The notes: generated by a model not told the origin, from the sequence alone. A stretch of DNA of 64,000 bases from Anolis carolinensis (GCF_035594765.1 NW_026943828.1:5175175-5239174); one strand, 5' to 3'; positions 3,819-64,000 are shown, numbered from the stretch's first letter. Numbers and translations are program-made.

Positions 3819-5264
3819 TTAGGGCTTCTCCCCAGTGTGAGTCCATTGATGTGAACGTAGGCCTGAACTATGAGTGAAGCTCTGTCCACACTCCAGGCAT
3901 TTATAGGGTTTCTCCCCAGTGTGAGTCCTTTGATGTGAACGTAGTCCTGAACTCTGAGTGAAGCTCTGTCCACACTCCAGGCATTTATAGGGTTTCTCCC
4001 CAGTGTGAGTCCTTTGATGTGAACGTAGTCCTGAACTCTGAGTGAAGCTCTGTCCACACTCCAGGCAGTTATGGGGTTTCTCCCCAGTGTGGGTCCTTTG
4101 ATGTCTATGTAAGCTTCCCTTCTGAGTGAAGCTCTGTCCACACTCCAGGCAGTTATAGGGTTTCTCCCCAGTGTGGGTCCTTTGATGTCTATGTAGATGT
4201 GAATTATGAGTGAAGCTCTGTCCACACTCCAGGCAGTTATAGGGTTTCTCCCCAGTGTGAGTCCTTTGATGTTTATGCAAGCTTCCCTTCTGAGTGAAGC
4301 TCTGTCCACACTCCAGGCAGTTATAGGTTTTCTCCCCAGTGTGAGTCCTTTGATGGGAACGTAGGCCTGAACTATGAGCAAAGCTCTGTCCACACTCCAG
4401 GCATTTATAGGGTTTCTCCCCAGTGTGGGTCCTTTGATGTGAACGTAGTCCTGAACTACGAGCAAAGCTCTGTCCACACTCCAGGCATTTATAGGGTTTC
4501 TCCCCAGTGTGAGTCCTTTGATGTGAATGTAAGGTTCCCTTCTGAGAGAAGCTCTGTCCACACTCCAGGCAGTTATAGGGTTTCTCCCCAGTGTGGGTCC
4601 TTTGATGTCTATGTAGATGTGAATTATGAGAGAAACTCTGTCCACACTCCAGGCATTTATAGGGCTTCTCTCCAGTGTGAGTCCTTTGATGTCTATGTAA
4701 GCTTCCCTTCTGAGTGAAGCTCTGTCCACACTCCAGGCAGTTATAGGGTTTCTCCCCAGTGTGAGTCCTTTGATGTCTTTGTAAGTGTCCATTCTCAGTG
4801 AAGCTCTGTCCACAATCCAGGCATTTATAGGGTTTCTCCCCAGTGTGAGTTCTTTGATGTGTATGTAAGTGTCCCTTCTGAGTGAAGCTCTGTCCACACT
4901 CCAGGCAGTTATAGGGTTTCTCCCCAGTGTGAGTCCTTTGATGTGAACGTAGAGCTGAACTCTGAGTGAAGCTCTGTCCACACTCCAGGCATTTATAGGG
5001 TTTCTCCCCAGTGTGAGTCCTTTGATGTGTATGTAAATTTCCCTTCTGAGTGAAGCTCTGTCCACATTCCAGGCAGTTATAGGGTTTCTCCCCAGTGTGA
5101 GTCCTTTGATGTGTATGTAAGCTTCCCTTCTGAGTGAAGCTCTGTCCACACTCCAGGCAGTTATAGGGTTTCTCCCCAGTGTGAGTCCTTTGATGTGCCT
5201 TCAGCTTTCCATGCTGACTAAAGCTCTTTCCACTTTCGATACATTTATATGCTTTCTTCTCCAT
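3819..5264 (-). CDS. C2H2 zinc-finger protein ZF1, 17 units (first has C>S), no effector domain seen
   Basis: 28-aa repeats CxxC...HQRTH with TGEKP linkers; ATG in gacATGG context at 5264; TAA stop with two further finger units beyond it. Confidence 0.9.
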
Positions 5265-5334
5265 GTCAGCAGTGTTATGTATATTTAATTCTAAAAAGGA
5301 CACTTGATTCTTGTTTTTCCCTTTCTGATTACTC

Positions 5335-5574
5335 ACAGCAGTGGGTTCAAATTACAGGAAAGTGGATTCTTCCTGAACATTAAGAACTTCCTGACTGTTA
5401 GAGCTGTTCAGCAGTGGAACTCTCTGCCTCAAAATGCAGTGGAGGCTCCTCTGGAATCTTTTAAACAGAGGTCAGATGCTCATCTGTCAGGGGTACTTTG
5501 CACGTTTCCTGCACGGCAGAGGCCTGGACTGGGTGCCTCATGCAGTCTCTTCCGACTCTATGGTTCTACTCTAT
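5335..5574 (+). mobile_element. CR1 LINE 3' fragment, antisense to ZF1
   Basis: [50 protein letters not shown] matches the CR1 ORF2 C-terminus, followed by a short 3' UTR and TTCTA-type tail. Confidence 0.85.
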
Positions 5575-7043
5575 AATCCAAAGTGAATGTAGGAATTCTG
5601 CAGGATCAGCCACTTGAGAGGAATCCTTTTTCCTAGGGGACTGGTTTTCTTACTGCACTTTGGTTTCCAAATGCCTCAATATCTACTAGAAGCTGGTTCA
5701 TTTCCCATCACGGCAGGGGTGACTCCAGAGAACTCTCATGTCCTGGTCAAGAAAGAAGAAGCAAAAGGTTAGACATGAAGTCGCGTACCTCTGGCTCAAG
5801 GTAACAAAGCAAAAAGGGAAAGAAGAAAGGAAAGGTGGAAGGAAGGGAGGAAACACAGAAGGAGGGAACTGAACCCTTTTCCCATATTGGAGGACCACAC
5901 TAATTTCATTGGGTCAAATCCAAACATGGTTAAAGGAACACAAGGCAGGCAGAATTCCTCCCAACATTCAAGGGTGTAACATATTCTGGATCATGGATTT
6001 CTGTGAATTACCAGTATTGTGCTAAATGCTCAAAGGAAAAAGGATTTCTTTATTGGTTGTGTCATTATCTCCCCTGCCACAGGGACCCCCAACTCTGCTT
6101 CCTCGGCATCTCAAAGGGTCACTCCGGCCACATTTCCCAAATGAATCTTCCAAACTAAGAAGGACCTGCCTTCTCAACTGGCTAATTCACAACCACGTTC
6201 ACAAATTGAGTCCATGCTGAACTAAGTTCCATTAGGCATTCTTGCATTCCCTCTGTTGAGCCCATGATGAGATGCAAAGACAGGCACAGCTCCAGCCACA
6301 AAGCCTCCTTCCTGCCGACTCCCTTCACCTTTTCCCACTTCCCCCTTTCCTTCTTTTTCCTCCATCCAGGGGAAATCCAAAGAAAACTGGAGGCCATGGA
6401 GAGAAAAGGTCTTCCTTGGATGCCTTTGGGAAGAACCTTCAAGGGGTCTCCACATGGCCTGAAAGGTTATCCCTTGATTCTGTAAGGCTGAAAACATAAA
6501 TGACTGGGAGAAGAACTGGCATCAGAGGGAACTTCCAAAAGAAAGGGCCTGGTATTCTATCTCCCCAAACTCTGGCAACTGCAAATGGTTAAGACAGATA
6601 TAGAAGGAAGGTTTCTAATGGTAACGATGGAACTACAAACAATTACTCAAGTATAAGCCGGCTTTTCAGCATGTTTTTAATGCTGCAAAAGCCCCCCTTG
6701 GCTTATACTCAGGTGAGGGAGGGAAGGAGGGAGACGGGTGTTGCTGAGAGGCAGCTGTCACCGTTTGCAGTCCTTGTCCTTGTGACTGAACGAAAGAGGG
6801 TGCCTCCCTGAGGGAACAAGGCTGCACTTGAGTGAGGGCGAAGAGGTCCTCAACTTCACCACCGGCAGATGAGTGAGACTGACAAGGAGGAGGAGCCGGG
6901 CACTTCTTCCTCAGCGCATCCACAGCAGAAAAGCATGAGCTTGCCCTCCCTCCACTAAAGCCTTGTTTCCTCAAGGAGGCTCCTGGCCCTCGACACCCGA
7001 CCGAAGAGGAGGAGGAGGAGGAGGCAGAGGAGAGAGAGGAGGA

Positions 7044-62711: not shown

Positions 62712-62953
62712 TCTAGAGTAGAACCATAGAGTCGGAAGAGACTGCATGAGGCACCCAGTCCAGGCCTCTGCCGTGCAGGAAAACCGCAAAGTACCCCTGA
62801 CAGATGAGCATCTAGTCTCTGTTTAAAGGATTCCAAAGGAGCATCCACTGCATTTTGAGGCAGAGAGTTCCACTGCTGAACAGCTCTAACAGTCAGGAAG
62901 TTCTTAATGTTCAGGAAGAATCCACTTTCCTGTAATTTGAACCCACTGCTGTG
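62712..62953 (-). mobile_element. CR1 3' fragment, antisense to ZF5
   Basis: Same peptide as 5304..5576. Confidence 0.85.
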
Positions 62954-63022
62954 AGTAATCAGAAAGGGAAAAACGAGAATCAAGTGTCCTTATTAGAATT
63001 AAATATACATAACACTGCTGAC

Positions 63023-64000
63023 ATGGAGAAGAAAGCATATAAATGTATCGAAAGTGGAAAGAGCTTTAGTCAGCATGGAAAGCTGAAGGCACATCAAAGG
63101 ACTCACACTGGGGAGAAACCCTATAACTGCCTGGAGTGTGGACAGAGCTTTGCTGATAGTTCAACTCTACGTAAACATCAAAGGACTCACACTGGGGAGA
63201 AACCCTATAAATGCCTGGAGTGTGGACAGAGCTTCTCTCGTAATTCACATCTACATAGACATCAAAGGACTCACACTGGGGAGAAACCCTATAAATGCCT
63301 GGAGTGTGGACAGAGCTTTGCTCAGAGGGGAAACCTAAATTCACATCAAAGGACTCACACTGGGGAGAAACCCTATACATGCCTGGAGTGTGGACAGAGC
63401 TTTGCTCGTAGTTCAGGACTACGTTCACATCAAAGGACTCACACTGGGGAGAAATCCTATAACTGCCTGGAGTGTGGACAGAGCTTCGCTCACAGTTCAG
63501 CTTTACATAGACATCAAAGGACTCACACTGGGGAGAAACCCTATCACTGCCTGGAGTGTGGACAGAGCTTTGCTTGTAGTTCAGGACTACGTTCACATCA
63601 AAGGACTCACACTGGGGAGAAACCCTATGAATGCCTGGAGTGTGGACAGAGCTTTGCTCGTAGTTCAGCTCTACGTAGACATCAAAGGATTCACACTGGG
63701 GAGAAACCCTATGAATGCCTGGAGTGTGGACAGAGCTTCGCTCATAGTTCAGCTCTACGTTCCCATCAAAGGACTCACACTGGGGAGAAACCCTATGAAT
63801 GCCTGGAGTGTGGACAGACCTTCGCTCAGATTTCAACTTTACATTCACATCAAAGAACTCACACTGGGGAGAAACCCTTTAAATGCCTGGAGTGTGGACA
63901 GAGCTGCACTCACAGTTCAGACTTACGTTCACATCAAAGGACTCACACTGGGGAGAAACCCTATGAATGCCTGGAGTGTGGACAGAGCTTTGCTCGTAGT
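63023..64000 (+). CDS. C2H2 zinc-finger protein ZF5, 11 complete units plus a partial one (first has C>S); runs off the window
   Basis: Read manually: [24 protein letters not shown] then open C2H2 repeats to the window end; missing from the ORF track because no stop is reached. Confidence 0.9.

Follow-up and report, generated by a model that had tools for sequence, protein, structure and literature searches.

When neighbouring zinc-finger genes carry the same finger at different ranks of their arrays, has the finger travelled between the genes, or has it stayed in its own gene while fingers around it came and went? The question is raised by a 64,000-nt stretch of the Anolis carolinensis genome (the window), within which five arrays of 84-bp finger units, designated ZF1 to ZF5, were compared with one another. 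An earlier note on this DNA had taken the recurring fingers as cassettes that unequal exchange and gene conversion, within and between paralogs, reshuffle into new DNA-binding specificities. We consider it probable that the window holds a cluster of at least five poly-C2H2 zinc-finger genes, young and lineage-specific, which ordinary recombination has reshaped and in which the shared cassettes are mostly displaced orthologous fingers.

Tandem Repeats Finder (TRF) places the five period-84 arrays at 3625-5197, 29638-31124, 37164-38282, 49428-50746 and 63090-64000, and a regular-expression search of all six translated frames counts 75 canonical C2H2 fingers within their limits. Cutting the arrays in register, with a unit defined as 28 codons starting two residues ahead of the first Cys, gives 81 units (20 in ZF1, 19 in ZF2, 14 in ZF3, 17 in ZF4 and 11 complete ones in ZF5). 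ZF1, ZF2 and ZF4 are encoded on the minus strand, ZF3 and ZF5 on the plus strand. The fingers are tandem C-x2-C-x12-H-x3-H modules of the Krueppel-type poly-C2H2 class, matched by the Pfam family zf-C2H2 in 9-18 stretches per open reading frame (ORF) with E values of 1e-67 to 1e-104; they are joined by a TGEKP(Y/F) linker with a 28-residue/84-bp period, the linker codons being nearly invariant and zf-H2C2_2 matching in 10-17 stretches per ORF. Pfam recognises only C2H2 families in the five ORFs.

Regular expression, register cut and Pfam (for ZF1 together with TRF) delimit the arrays as follows. ZF2 (29581-31176, minus strand) has 18 intact fingers and a degenerate unit past the stop; its ORF spans 29665-31218, or starts from 31191, and is closed by a TAG at 29662-29664. 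ZF3 (37111-38286, plus strand) has 13 intact fingers, again with a degenerate unit past the stop, and an ORF from the conserved ATG at 37096 to 38202. ZF4 (49371-50798, minus strand; ORF 49455-50840), with 16 intact fingers and a degenerate unit, is a near-copy of ZF2 minus two units and with one helix replaced. The frames of these three genes end at a TAG that stands in place of the first Tyr of the last, degenerate unit. ZF5 (63038-64000, plus strand) is covered up to the end of the window, which truncates it after 11 complete units and the start of a twelfth. ZF1 (3570-5249, minus strand) consists of 20 units of 84 bp, of which 17 lie in the open frame 3822-5264 that begins at the conserved ATG, the first of them with a Cys-to-Ser change. 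Its last units are cut off by a TAA at 3819-3821 and a TGA at 3768-3770, both ZF1-specific changes within unit 18. ZF1 also carries the common terminal TAG, but its frame closes two units earlier, and its homology to the other genes stops near 3609, within its last unit; the gene thus lacks two fingers of the ancestral frame and may be eroding from its 3' end. In all five genes the conserved ATG lies 15 nt ahead of finger 1.

The arrays combine a uniform scaffold with divergent helices. Over 77 units the per-site nucleotide diversity is 0.36 in codons 11-18, which encode the helix, and 0.074 elsewhere, in agreement with the earlier description of the 84-bp units as almost invariant outside the helix. 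Within the scaffold, variation is confined to codon 2 (K/N/T) and the third base of Phe-10; third positions outside the helix average 0.13, and several fourfold sites are invariant. Mean unit DNA identity is 0.84-0.88. The inter-finger identity of scaffold residues is 0.85-0.94, compared with a median of 0.70 and a 95th percentile of 0.84 in 120 vertebrate ZNF proteins retrieved by a word search. Values of 0.85-0.93 are also reached by a few lizard, bear and catfish proteins among those 120, so the scaffold uniformity is real and high, but not unique.

We propose that the genes arose via segmental duplication, direct for ZF2/ZF4 and inverted for ZF1/ZF5, and that their arrays would recombine homologously in register because the 60 scaffold bases of the 84-bp unit are nearly identical in every unit. 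Unequal crossing-over would delete or duplicate fingers or blocks of fingers and shift the rank of the survivors; gene conversion would homogenise sister genes and overwrite single helices. Amino-acid-changing substitutions would build up preferentially at the contact positions -1, 2, 3 and 6, and purifying selection would maintain the reading frame together with zinc ligands and linker. A cassette that recurs at different ranks would, for the most part, be a surviving orthologous finger shifted by nearby gains and losses of units. Crossing-over and conversion are observed in ZF2/ZF4 and in ZF1, and helix-focused diversity and conservation of the frame are observed as well; the direction of each recombination event is what we infer.

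The clearest record is that of ZF2 and ZF4. Self-comparison identifies a direct segmental duplication whose copy A (18332-32726) carries ZF2 and whose copy B (39222-52342) carries ZF4, with a background substitution divergence of 2.99% (200/6686 sites) and private insertions at 26034-27867 in copy A and at about 45957-47152 in copy B. Within it, a homogenised tract of ~3.2 kb (28400-31597, partner 48201-51219) has 15 mismatches over 2933 aligned sites, i.e. 0.51% divergence compared with the 2.99% of the surrounding duplication (P = 4e-22). The tract covers the finger exon, 1.2 kb of the 3' flank and 0.4 kb of the 5' flank; as it extends into non-coding sequence, coding constraint cannot explain the homogeneity, which points to a conversion tract or a secondary re-duplication.

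Two changes in the arrays stand out against this uniform background, in which positional units of ZF2 and ZF4 are 0 or 1 nt apart. By unit comparison and exact matches, ZF2 units 10 and 11 (168 bp, 30253-30420, minus strand) are missing from ZF4, and ZF4 unit 9 is a recombinant that follows ZF2 unit 9 up to position 53 and has the state of ZF2 unit 11 at position 75. The crossover therefore falls within unit positions 54-74, the invariant H-x3-H/linker segment, corresponding to 30431-30451 in ZF2 unit 9 and 50053-50073 in ZF4 unit 9. The nearest relatives of ZF2 units 10 and 11 are 4-5 nt away, which makes a loss in ZF4 likelier than a fresh duplication in ZF2. The other change is a helix patch on the minus strand, found by the same unit comparison: ZF2 unit 15 (29948-29962) and ZF4 unit 13 (49738-49752) have six differences within 15 nt of the helix and none elsewhere in the units. 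At a divergence of ~0.3-0.5% far fewer than one difference is expected, which argues that one of the two helices has been overwritten. At five of the six sites ZF4 has the state of the helix that lies two units downstream, and the ZF2 version is 1 nt from another ZF2 helix, so that the direction of overwriting would take an outgroup to decide.

In ZF1, a unit-shift comparison reveals an internal duplication of five units (420 bp; 3906-4745, minus strand). Units 7-11 (4326-4745) and 12-16 (3906-4325) differ at 4, 3, 5, 7 and 6 positions, and other shifts give a mean of ~10. With the 168-bp loss, the 420-bp duplication and the helix patch, the arrays have properties of a coding minisatellite, namely high-identity head-to-tail units with in-register gain, loss and conversion. 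Unequal exchange and conversion, as the earlier note had proposed them, are accordingly seen within ZF1 and between ZF2 and ZF4; between non-sister genes, where no multi-unit identical tract is present, this part of the proposal is not supported.

The helices on which the idea of mobile cassettes was built are all where they had been reported. TENGHLQR occurs in ZF1 unit 6 and ZF3 unit 2, 2 nt apart, with both differences outside a nucleotide-identical helix; ADSSTLRK occurs in ZF3 unit 6 and ZF5 unit 2, 1 nt apart; AQI(G/S)TLHS occurs in ZF3 unit 9 and ZF5 unit 10, 4 nt apart. Unit 1 of ZF1 and ZF5 is identical, with the Cys-to-Ser change in both and an exact match of 113 nt, and the upstream flanks of these two genes are ~95.5% identical, as had also been claimed. 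In a maximum-likelihood (ML) tree over the 77 units, two classes are apparent, one with Gly-at-+2 helices such as QKG and one with xSSxLRx helices; the first fingers form one clade with support of 100/100, and several cross-gene clades are well supported (ZF3 units 5/6 with ZF5 unit 2, 98/85; ZF5 unit 3 with ZF1 units 8/13, 100/93; ZF3 unit 9 with ZF5 unit 10, 91/90; ZF1 unit 6 with ZF3 unit 2, 92/62). Outside ZF2/ZF4, five helices are identical over all 21 nt between gene lineages, one of them being the ZF1/ZF5 first finger, and Asn at scaffold codon 2 accompanies 13 of 13 QKG helices (in ZF1 and ZF2) compared with 13 of 44 other units. The nucleotide-identical helices and the QKG-Asn association indicate that the shared fingers are homologous as whole units and not convergent.

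Homology of the shared fingers leaves the question of how they came to be shared. When gene labels are mapped on the tree, with ZF4 and the first fingers set aside, 19 changes are needed compared with 31.0 after shuffling (minimum 24; P < 0.001), i.e. units group by gene. A tree built on the scaffold only clusters neither by gene label (P = 0.15) nor by helix class (P = 0.23), the 60 nearly invariant bases having too little signal to reveal movement of whole cassettes.

The flanks supply a yardstick for these distances. Self-comparison and alignment identify an upstream block common to ZF1 (5250-7686, minus strand), ZF3 (35504-37110) and ZF5 (60716-63037), the relation between ZF1 and ZF5 being inverted; its proximal ~370 bp are also present in ZF2 and ZF4. 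Stop codons interrupt the finger frame in this block, which seems to derive from a transposon and terminates at the conserved ATG. Over 371 ungapped columns the differences are 4.0% for ZF1-ZF5, 7.0% for ZF1-ZF3, 6.7% for ZF5-ZF3, 10-13% between these three genes and ZF2/ZF4, and 0% for ZF2-ZF4. A single tandem duplication of the ZF2-ZF3 pair into ZF4-ZF5 is ruled out as the whole story, because the ZF3 and ZF5 flanks are 6-7% apart compared with the 3% background of ZF2/ZF4, and ZF5 is nearer to ZF1. When 5250-7042 (ZF1) is compared with 61273-63037 (ZF5), identity reaches 99-100% over the 200 bp ahead of finger 1 and over that finger, a segment that may be a separate ZF1/ZF5 conversion tract ending at the boundary of units 1 and 2.

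The diversity of the helices is concentrated at the residues that contact DNA, as the earlier note had predicted. Parsimony counts of codon changes on the unit tree, which ignore recombination among units and are indicative only, give 78.5 nonsynonymous and 16.5 synonymous changes at contact codons -1, 2, 3 and 6, a nonsynonymous-to-synonymous ratio (N/S) per site of 1.56, or 2.2 against the pooled synonymous rate. The other helix codons have 38.0 and 13.0 changes (N/S per site 1.0), and scaffold plus linker 67.0 and 39.0 (N/S 0.40), or 44.0 and 37.0 without codon 2 (0.28). The statistic P of Baker et al. (PMC5519329), the share of contact residues in amino-acid diversity, is 0.37-0.47 here, compared with a median of 0.27 in the same 120 vertebrate ZNF proteins, which stand in for the species' own full ZNF set as background; each value is reached by 0 to 3 of the 120, which places the arrays in the top few percent. 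Positive selection would explain this excess at contact sites. The frame is clearly constrained: each of the 77 units measures exactly 84 nt, with zero frameshifts, the flanks show 0.05-0.11 indel events per substitution, and with ~250 substitutions inferred on the unit tree neutrality would imply more than 10 frameshifts, of which none is seen. The Cys/His ligands are intact in 75-77 of the 77 units.

What kind of gene the arrays belong to was addressed by searches within the 64-kb window. The N-terminal parts of 20 squamate SCAN/KRAB ZNF proteins, used as tblastn queries, match nothing outside the arrays below E = 0.06; a KRAB A/B box exon was not found in the 64 kb that the search covered, nor was a SCAN exon, for which only weak matches (E 0.06-1.6) occur at 45785-46135, inside a retroelement insertion. 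The N-terminal parts of eight PRDM9 or PRDM9-like proteins, searched for PR/SET, KRAB and SSXRD exons, give three matches outside the arrays, all with E >= 0.047. ZNF linker regions are weakly and not significantly similar to 5660-5994 and 62548-62933 (E 0.05-1.6), which may be decayed linker sequence. By these searches ZF1 to ZF5 would be finger-only genes within the window. Word searches with ZF3 and ZF2 in a length window of 0.55-1.75x and an exact look-up of the five ORF versions retrieve no near-identical protein from the protein collection, the best identity among the matches listed being 65%. The proteins are predicted to be made and to bind DNA. For the ZF3 region 36900-38700, just 0.40-0.53 of the sampled words occur in 20 public sequencing runs, which come from eight studies of a single organism, are in no case recorded as RNA and in part comprise only 79-87 million letters; this word content could reflect expression, alleles that differ from the assembly, or both, and proves nothing.

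How much of this could be the work of a common finger-cassette pool, in which frequent ectopic conversion and unequal exchange move fingers across genes and ranks and thereby create new binding specificities? Conversion between paralogs does occur, as the ZF2/ZF4 tract attests, and the supported cross-gene clades and the five nucleotide-identical helices speak for such a pool. ZF1 in particular mixes QKG units nearest to ZF2/ZF4 (2 nt), a TENGHLQR unit nearest to ZF3 (2 nt), and HNSHLHR and RSSGLRS units nearest to ZF5 (3 nt). But maximal exact matches, used as a substitute for GENECONV, are positive for ZF2/ZF4 and for unit 1 of ZF1/ZF5 only; between non-sister arrays no other match of at least 95 nt exists, which argues that no finger has recently travelled together with its neighbours. 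Shared fingers are 1-4 of 84 nt apart and first fingers 0-6 nt, with flanks at 4-13% (4-7% among ZF1, ZF3 and ZF5), so that a divergence of 1-4 nt would be about that expected for retained orthologous coding units. The well-matched pairs follow the same order in ZF1, ZF3 and ZF5 (TENGHLQR, ADSSTLRK, (H/R)NSHLHR, RSSGLRS, AQI(G/S)TLHS), the order being kept wherever it can be judged, and the units cluster by gene. The same cassette at different ranks, offered as a sign of inter-gene exchange, thus comes down to a few collinear cases for which exchange is not needed. Collinear descent would be a sufficient explanation of the shared fingers, though not a proven one, and we regard the cassette pool as unlikely, if still to be reckoned with.

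Several observations weigh against the preferred reading of displaced orthologous fingers in genes under selection. The permutation test of collinearity has no power, because shared units are too few and shuffled orders score equally well. ZF1 has a mosaic appearance: 2 nt separate its QKG units from units of ZF2, yet the first fingers of the two genes are 6 nt apart, and the QKG units could have come by ectopic conversion rather than by retention. The ZF1-ZF5 flank identity is patchy, with blocks of 97-100% beside blocks of 87-94% and, in mid-block, a near star tree of the three genes, which points to a history of more than simple duplication; in part, the contrast of a similar flank with a different array may stem from a converted 5' end instead of rapid turnover in the array. 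The contact-site excess is modest among the 18 closest disjoint unit pairs, where contact codons hold 13 of 55 differences (24%, with 14% expected; P = 0.04) in a sample that is biased against pairs with a changed helix, and the parsimony N/S treats the units as if they had never recombined. Within the length ranges searched, the protein collection also contains no near-identical protein. A bolder form of exchange, in which ZF1 would be a genuine mosaic put together by ectopic conversion, with donors of the ZF2 and of the ZF3/ZF5 type, and the cluster an effector-less, finger-only family with contact diversity in the range of squamate PRDM9 and a candidate fast-evolving DNA-targeting system, appears to us quite unlikely. 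A last explanation would make the arrays non-functional copies of a terminal ZNF exon without an effector domain, drifting as neutral minisatellites and owing the contrast of helix and scaffold to functional ancestors. It would account for the missing KRAB, SCAN and PR/SET exons in the 64 kb, the stop-closed, transposon-like region upstream of the fingers, the two in-frame stops near the 3' end of ZF1, the zinc ligand lost from finger 1 of ZF1 and ZF5, the lack of a matching protein and the unproven expression. It does not sit well with four arrays of 13-18 open fingers that have kept every unit at 84 nt and nearly every ligand intact despite flanks up to 10-13% diverged and prone to indels, with a scaffold N/S of 0.28-0.40, or with a conserved ATG ahead of finger 1 in every gene. 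Runs of 79-87 million letters from several studies that hold ~45% of the ZF3 words would also be hard to obtain from low-coverage DNA and suggest RNA, the run type not being on record. We judge neutral drift of non-functional copies very unlikely.

The cluster of retained and displaced fingers thus favoured resembles several published systems. Emerson and Thomas (2009, PMC2604467) reported that contact residues are under positive selection in the lineage-specific poly-ZF expansions of many vertebrates, with GENECONV-detectable conversions between paralogs and finger numbers that differ among nearly all paralog sets; Liu et al. (2014, PMC3971581) found that fingerprint divergence is mostly due to in-phase deletion or tandem duplication within the array. 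The Anolis genes share with these expansions the clustered recent paralogs, the differing finger number, the in-phase changes and the replacement excess at -1, 2, 3 and 6. Conversion between paralogs is a further common trait, GENECONV detecting short cases of it in the published expansions, in most genes of the chicken sets. The present locus differs in a crossover mapped to a 21-nt interval, in a 3.2-kb tract followed by two later array changes, in a scaffold identity (0.85-0.94) at the upper end of 120 proteins, and in that no effector domain was found. Finger-only genes are a common class in the lizard genome, for which Liu et al. (PMC3971581) list 723 ZNF-only models. In mouse, Kauzlaric et al. 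(2017, PMC5363842) described 'drifting and shifting' of finger arrays in paralogs and a 'satellite', MMSAT4, composed of ZNF arrays. The KZFP clusters and MMSAT4 have in common with the Anolis arrays the tandem-repeat-like uniformity, repetitions inside one gene, a retroelement-rich setting and many copies without a KRAB exon (related genetic units); they are mammalian and KRAB-based with a three-finger repeat consensus, and their expression and KAP1 binding have been measured. A further parallel is the zebrafish FiNZ-ZNF family of Wells et al. (10.1101/2022.11.29.518450), who see internal rearrangement and gene conversion as a general property of ZNF arrays: it is a large, young, clustered family without KRAB whose recent duplicates are positively selected at base-contacting residues, but it differs from the lizard arrays in its defined N-terminal domain and in the knock-down evidence that it represses transposons.

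The earlier note had singled out PRDM9 as the system whose pattern the arrays follow. Like the PRDM9 minisatellite (Oliver et al. 2009, PMC2779102; PMC5519329), they consist of 84-bp units with a homogeneous scaffold, contact-focused diversity and turnover by unequal exchange and conversion. In Table 1 of Baker et al. (2017, PMC5519329), P is 0.41-0.57 in the PRDM9 of turtles and squamates, mostly 0.5-1.0 in that of mammals and about 0.17-0.33 in the SET-only fish orthologues listed; the values of the Anolis arrays overlap the first range and fall well below the mammalian one. The arrays are unlike PRDM9 in being five paralogous genes and not one, in units of 84-88% DNA identity, and in that PR/SET, KRAB and SSXRD exons were not found in the window; Baker et al. 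(PMC5519329) could find no PRDM9 in this lizard. In some species other ZNF genes outrank PRDM9 (PMC5519329), so the contact-diversity signature is not exclusive to it. To call the pattern typical of PRDM9, as opposed to the diverging fingers of ordinary KRAB-ZNF genes, was too strong, as the same features have been published for young ZNF clusters (PMC2604467, PMC3971581, PMC5363842); the contrast with 'ordinary' KRAB-ZNF genes is true for old genes only. The proposed mechanism is the accepted one for young ZNF clusters and not a new cassette system.

Two assembly gaps lie in the upstream blocks. The first (7044-7177) is non-coding, 1.8 kb upstream of ZF1 and outside the arrays; the second (35812-35940) is 1.2 kb upstream of ZF3 finger 1, outside arrays and frames. 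Both fall at one paralogous position, where their flanks are collinear and co-oriented with each other and with the ungapped copy of ZF5 (near 61214-61272), in which the corresponding flanks are ~55-60 bp apart. Given this agreement with a third, ungapped copy, the sequence probably continues through both gaps, and none of the reading frames relies on this. Some short motif at the two sites seems hard to assemble. A CpG island at 32601-33600 lies between the head-to-head ZF2 and ZF3 and could plausibly serve as their shared promoter; a second one (13001-14200) is located 8 kb upstream of ZF1. At 14110-14666 lies an inverted sequence with 81% similarity to the region upstream of ZF2/ZF4 (31545-32095), as though ZF1 had once had a partner gene that has since disappeared.

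Retroelements and other repeats are spread among the genes. An open 527-codon Ty3/gypsy gag-protease frame (88-1671, minus strand) with Retrotrans_gag, zinc knuckle and aspartyl protease domains looks like a young long terminal repeat (LTR) element, and 601-2600 is CpG-rich. A 429-codon ATG frame (45778-47067, minus strand) resembles the C-terminal part of the reverse transcriptase of a long interspersed nuclear element (LINE), has no Pfam match and overlaps the private insertion of copy B. A LINE tail that contains a single C2H2-like knuckle lies upstream of ZF5, as does a fragment of a reverse transcriptase (58275-58997, minus strand; 59685-60269, plus strand). The six-frame search gives one unrelated finger outside the arrays, in a retroelement tail. 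Non-coding tandem repeats are found at 12137-12681 (159-bp unit, 3.4 copies) and, inside the duplicated segment, at 23370-23892 (281/137-bp unit, 2-3 copies).

The overall view of ZNF evolution is unchanged by this locus, and PRDM9-like allelic hypervariability or proven exchange between non-sister genes would raise its interest. If ZF1 were a true mosaic, the paralogous arrays of the cluster would act as donors of fingers to one another. As a compact and well-resolved example of its kind, the locus combines a crossover mapped in register, a dated conversion tract with two subsequent array changes, a block duplication and helix-focused diversity. It would be useful for relating the rate of finger turnover to that of point mutation, and for the annotation of finger-only ZNF genes in squamates.

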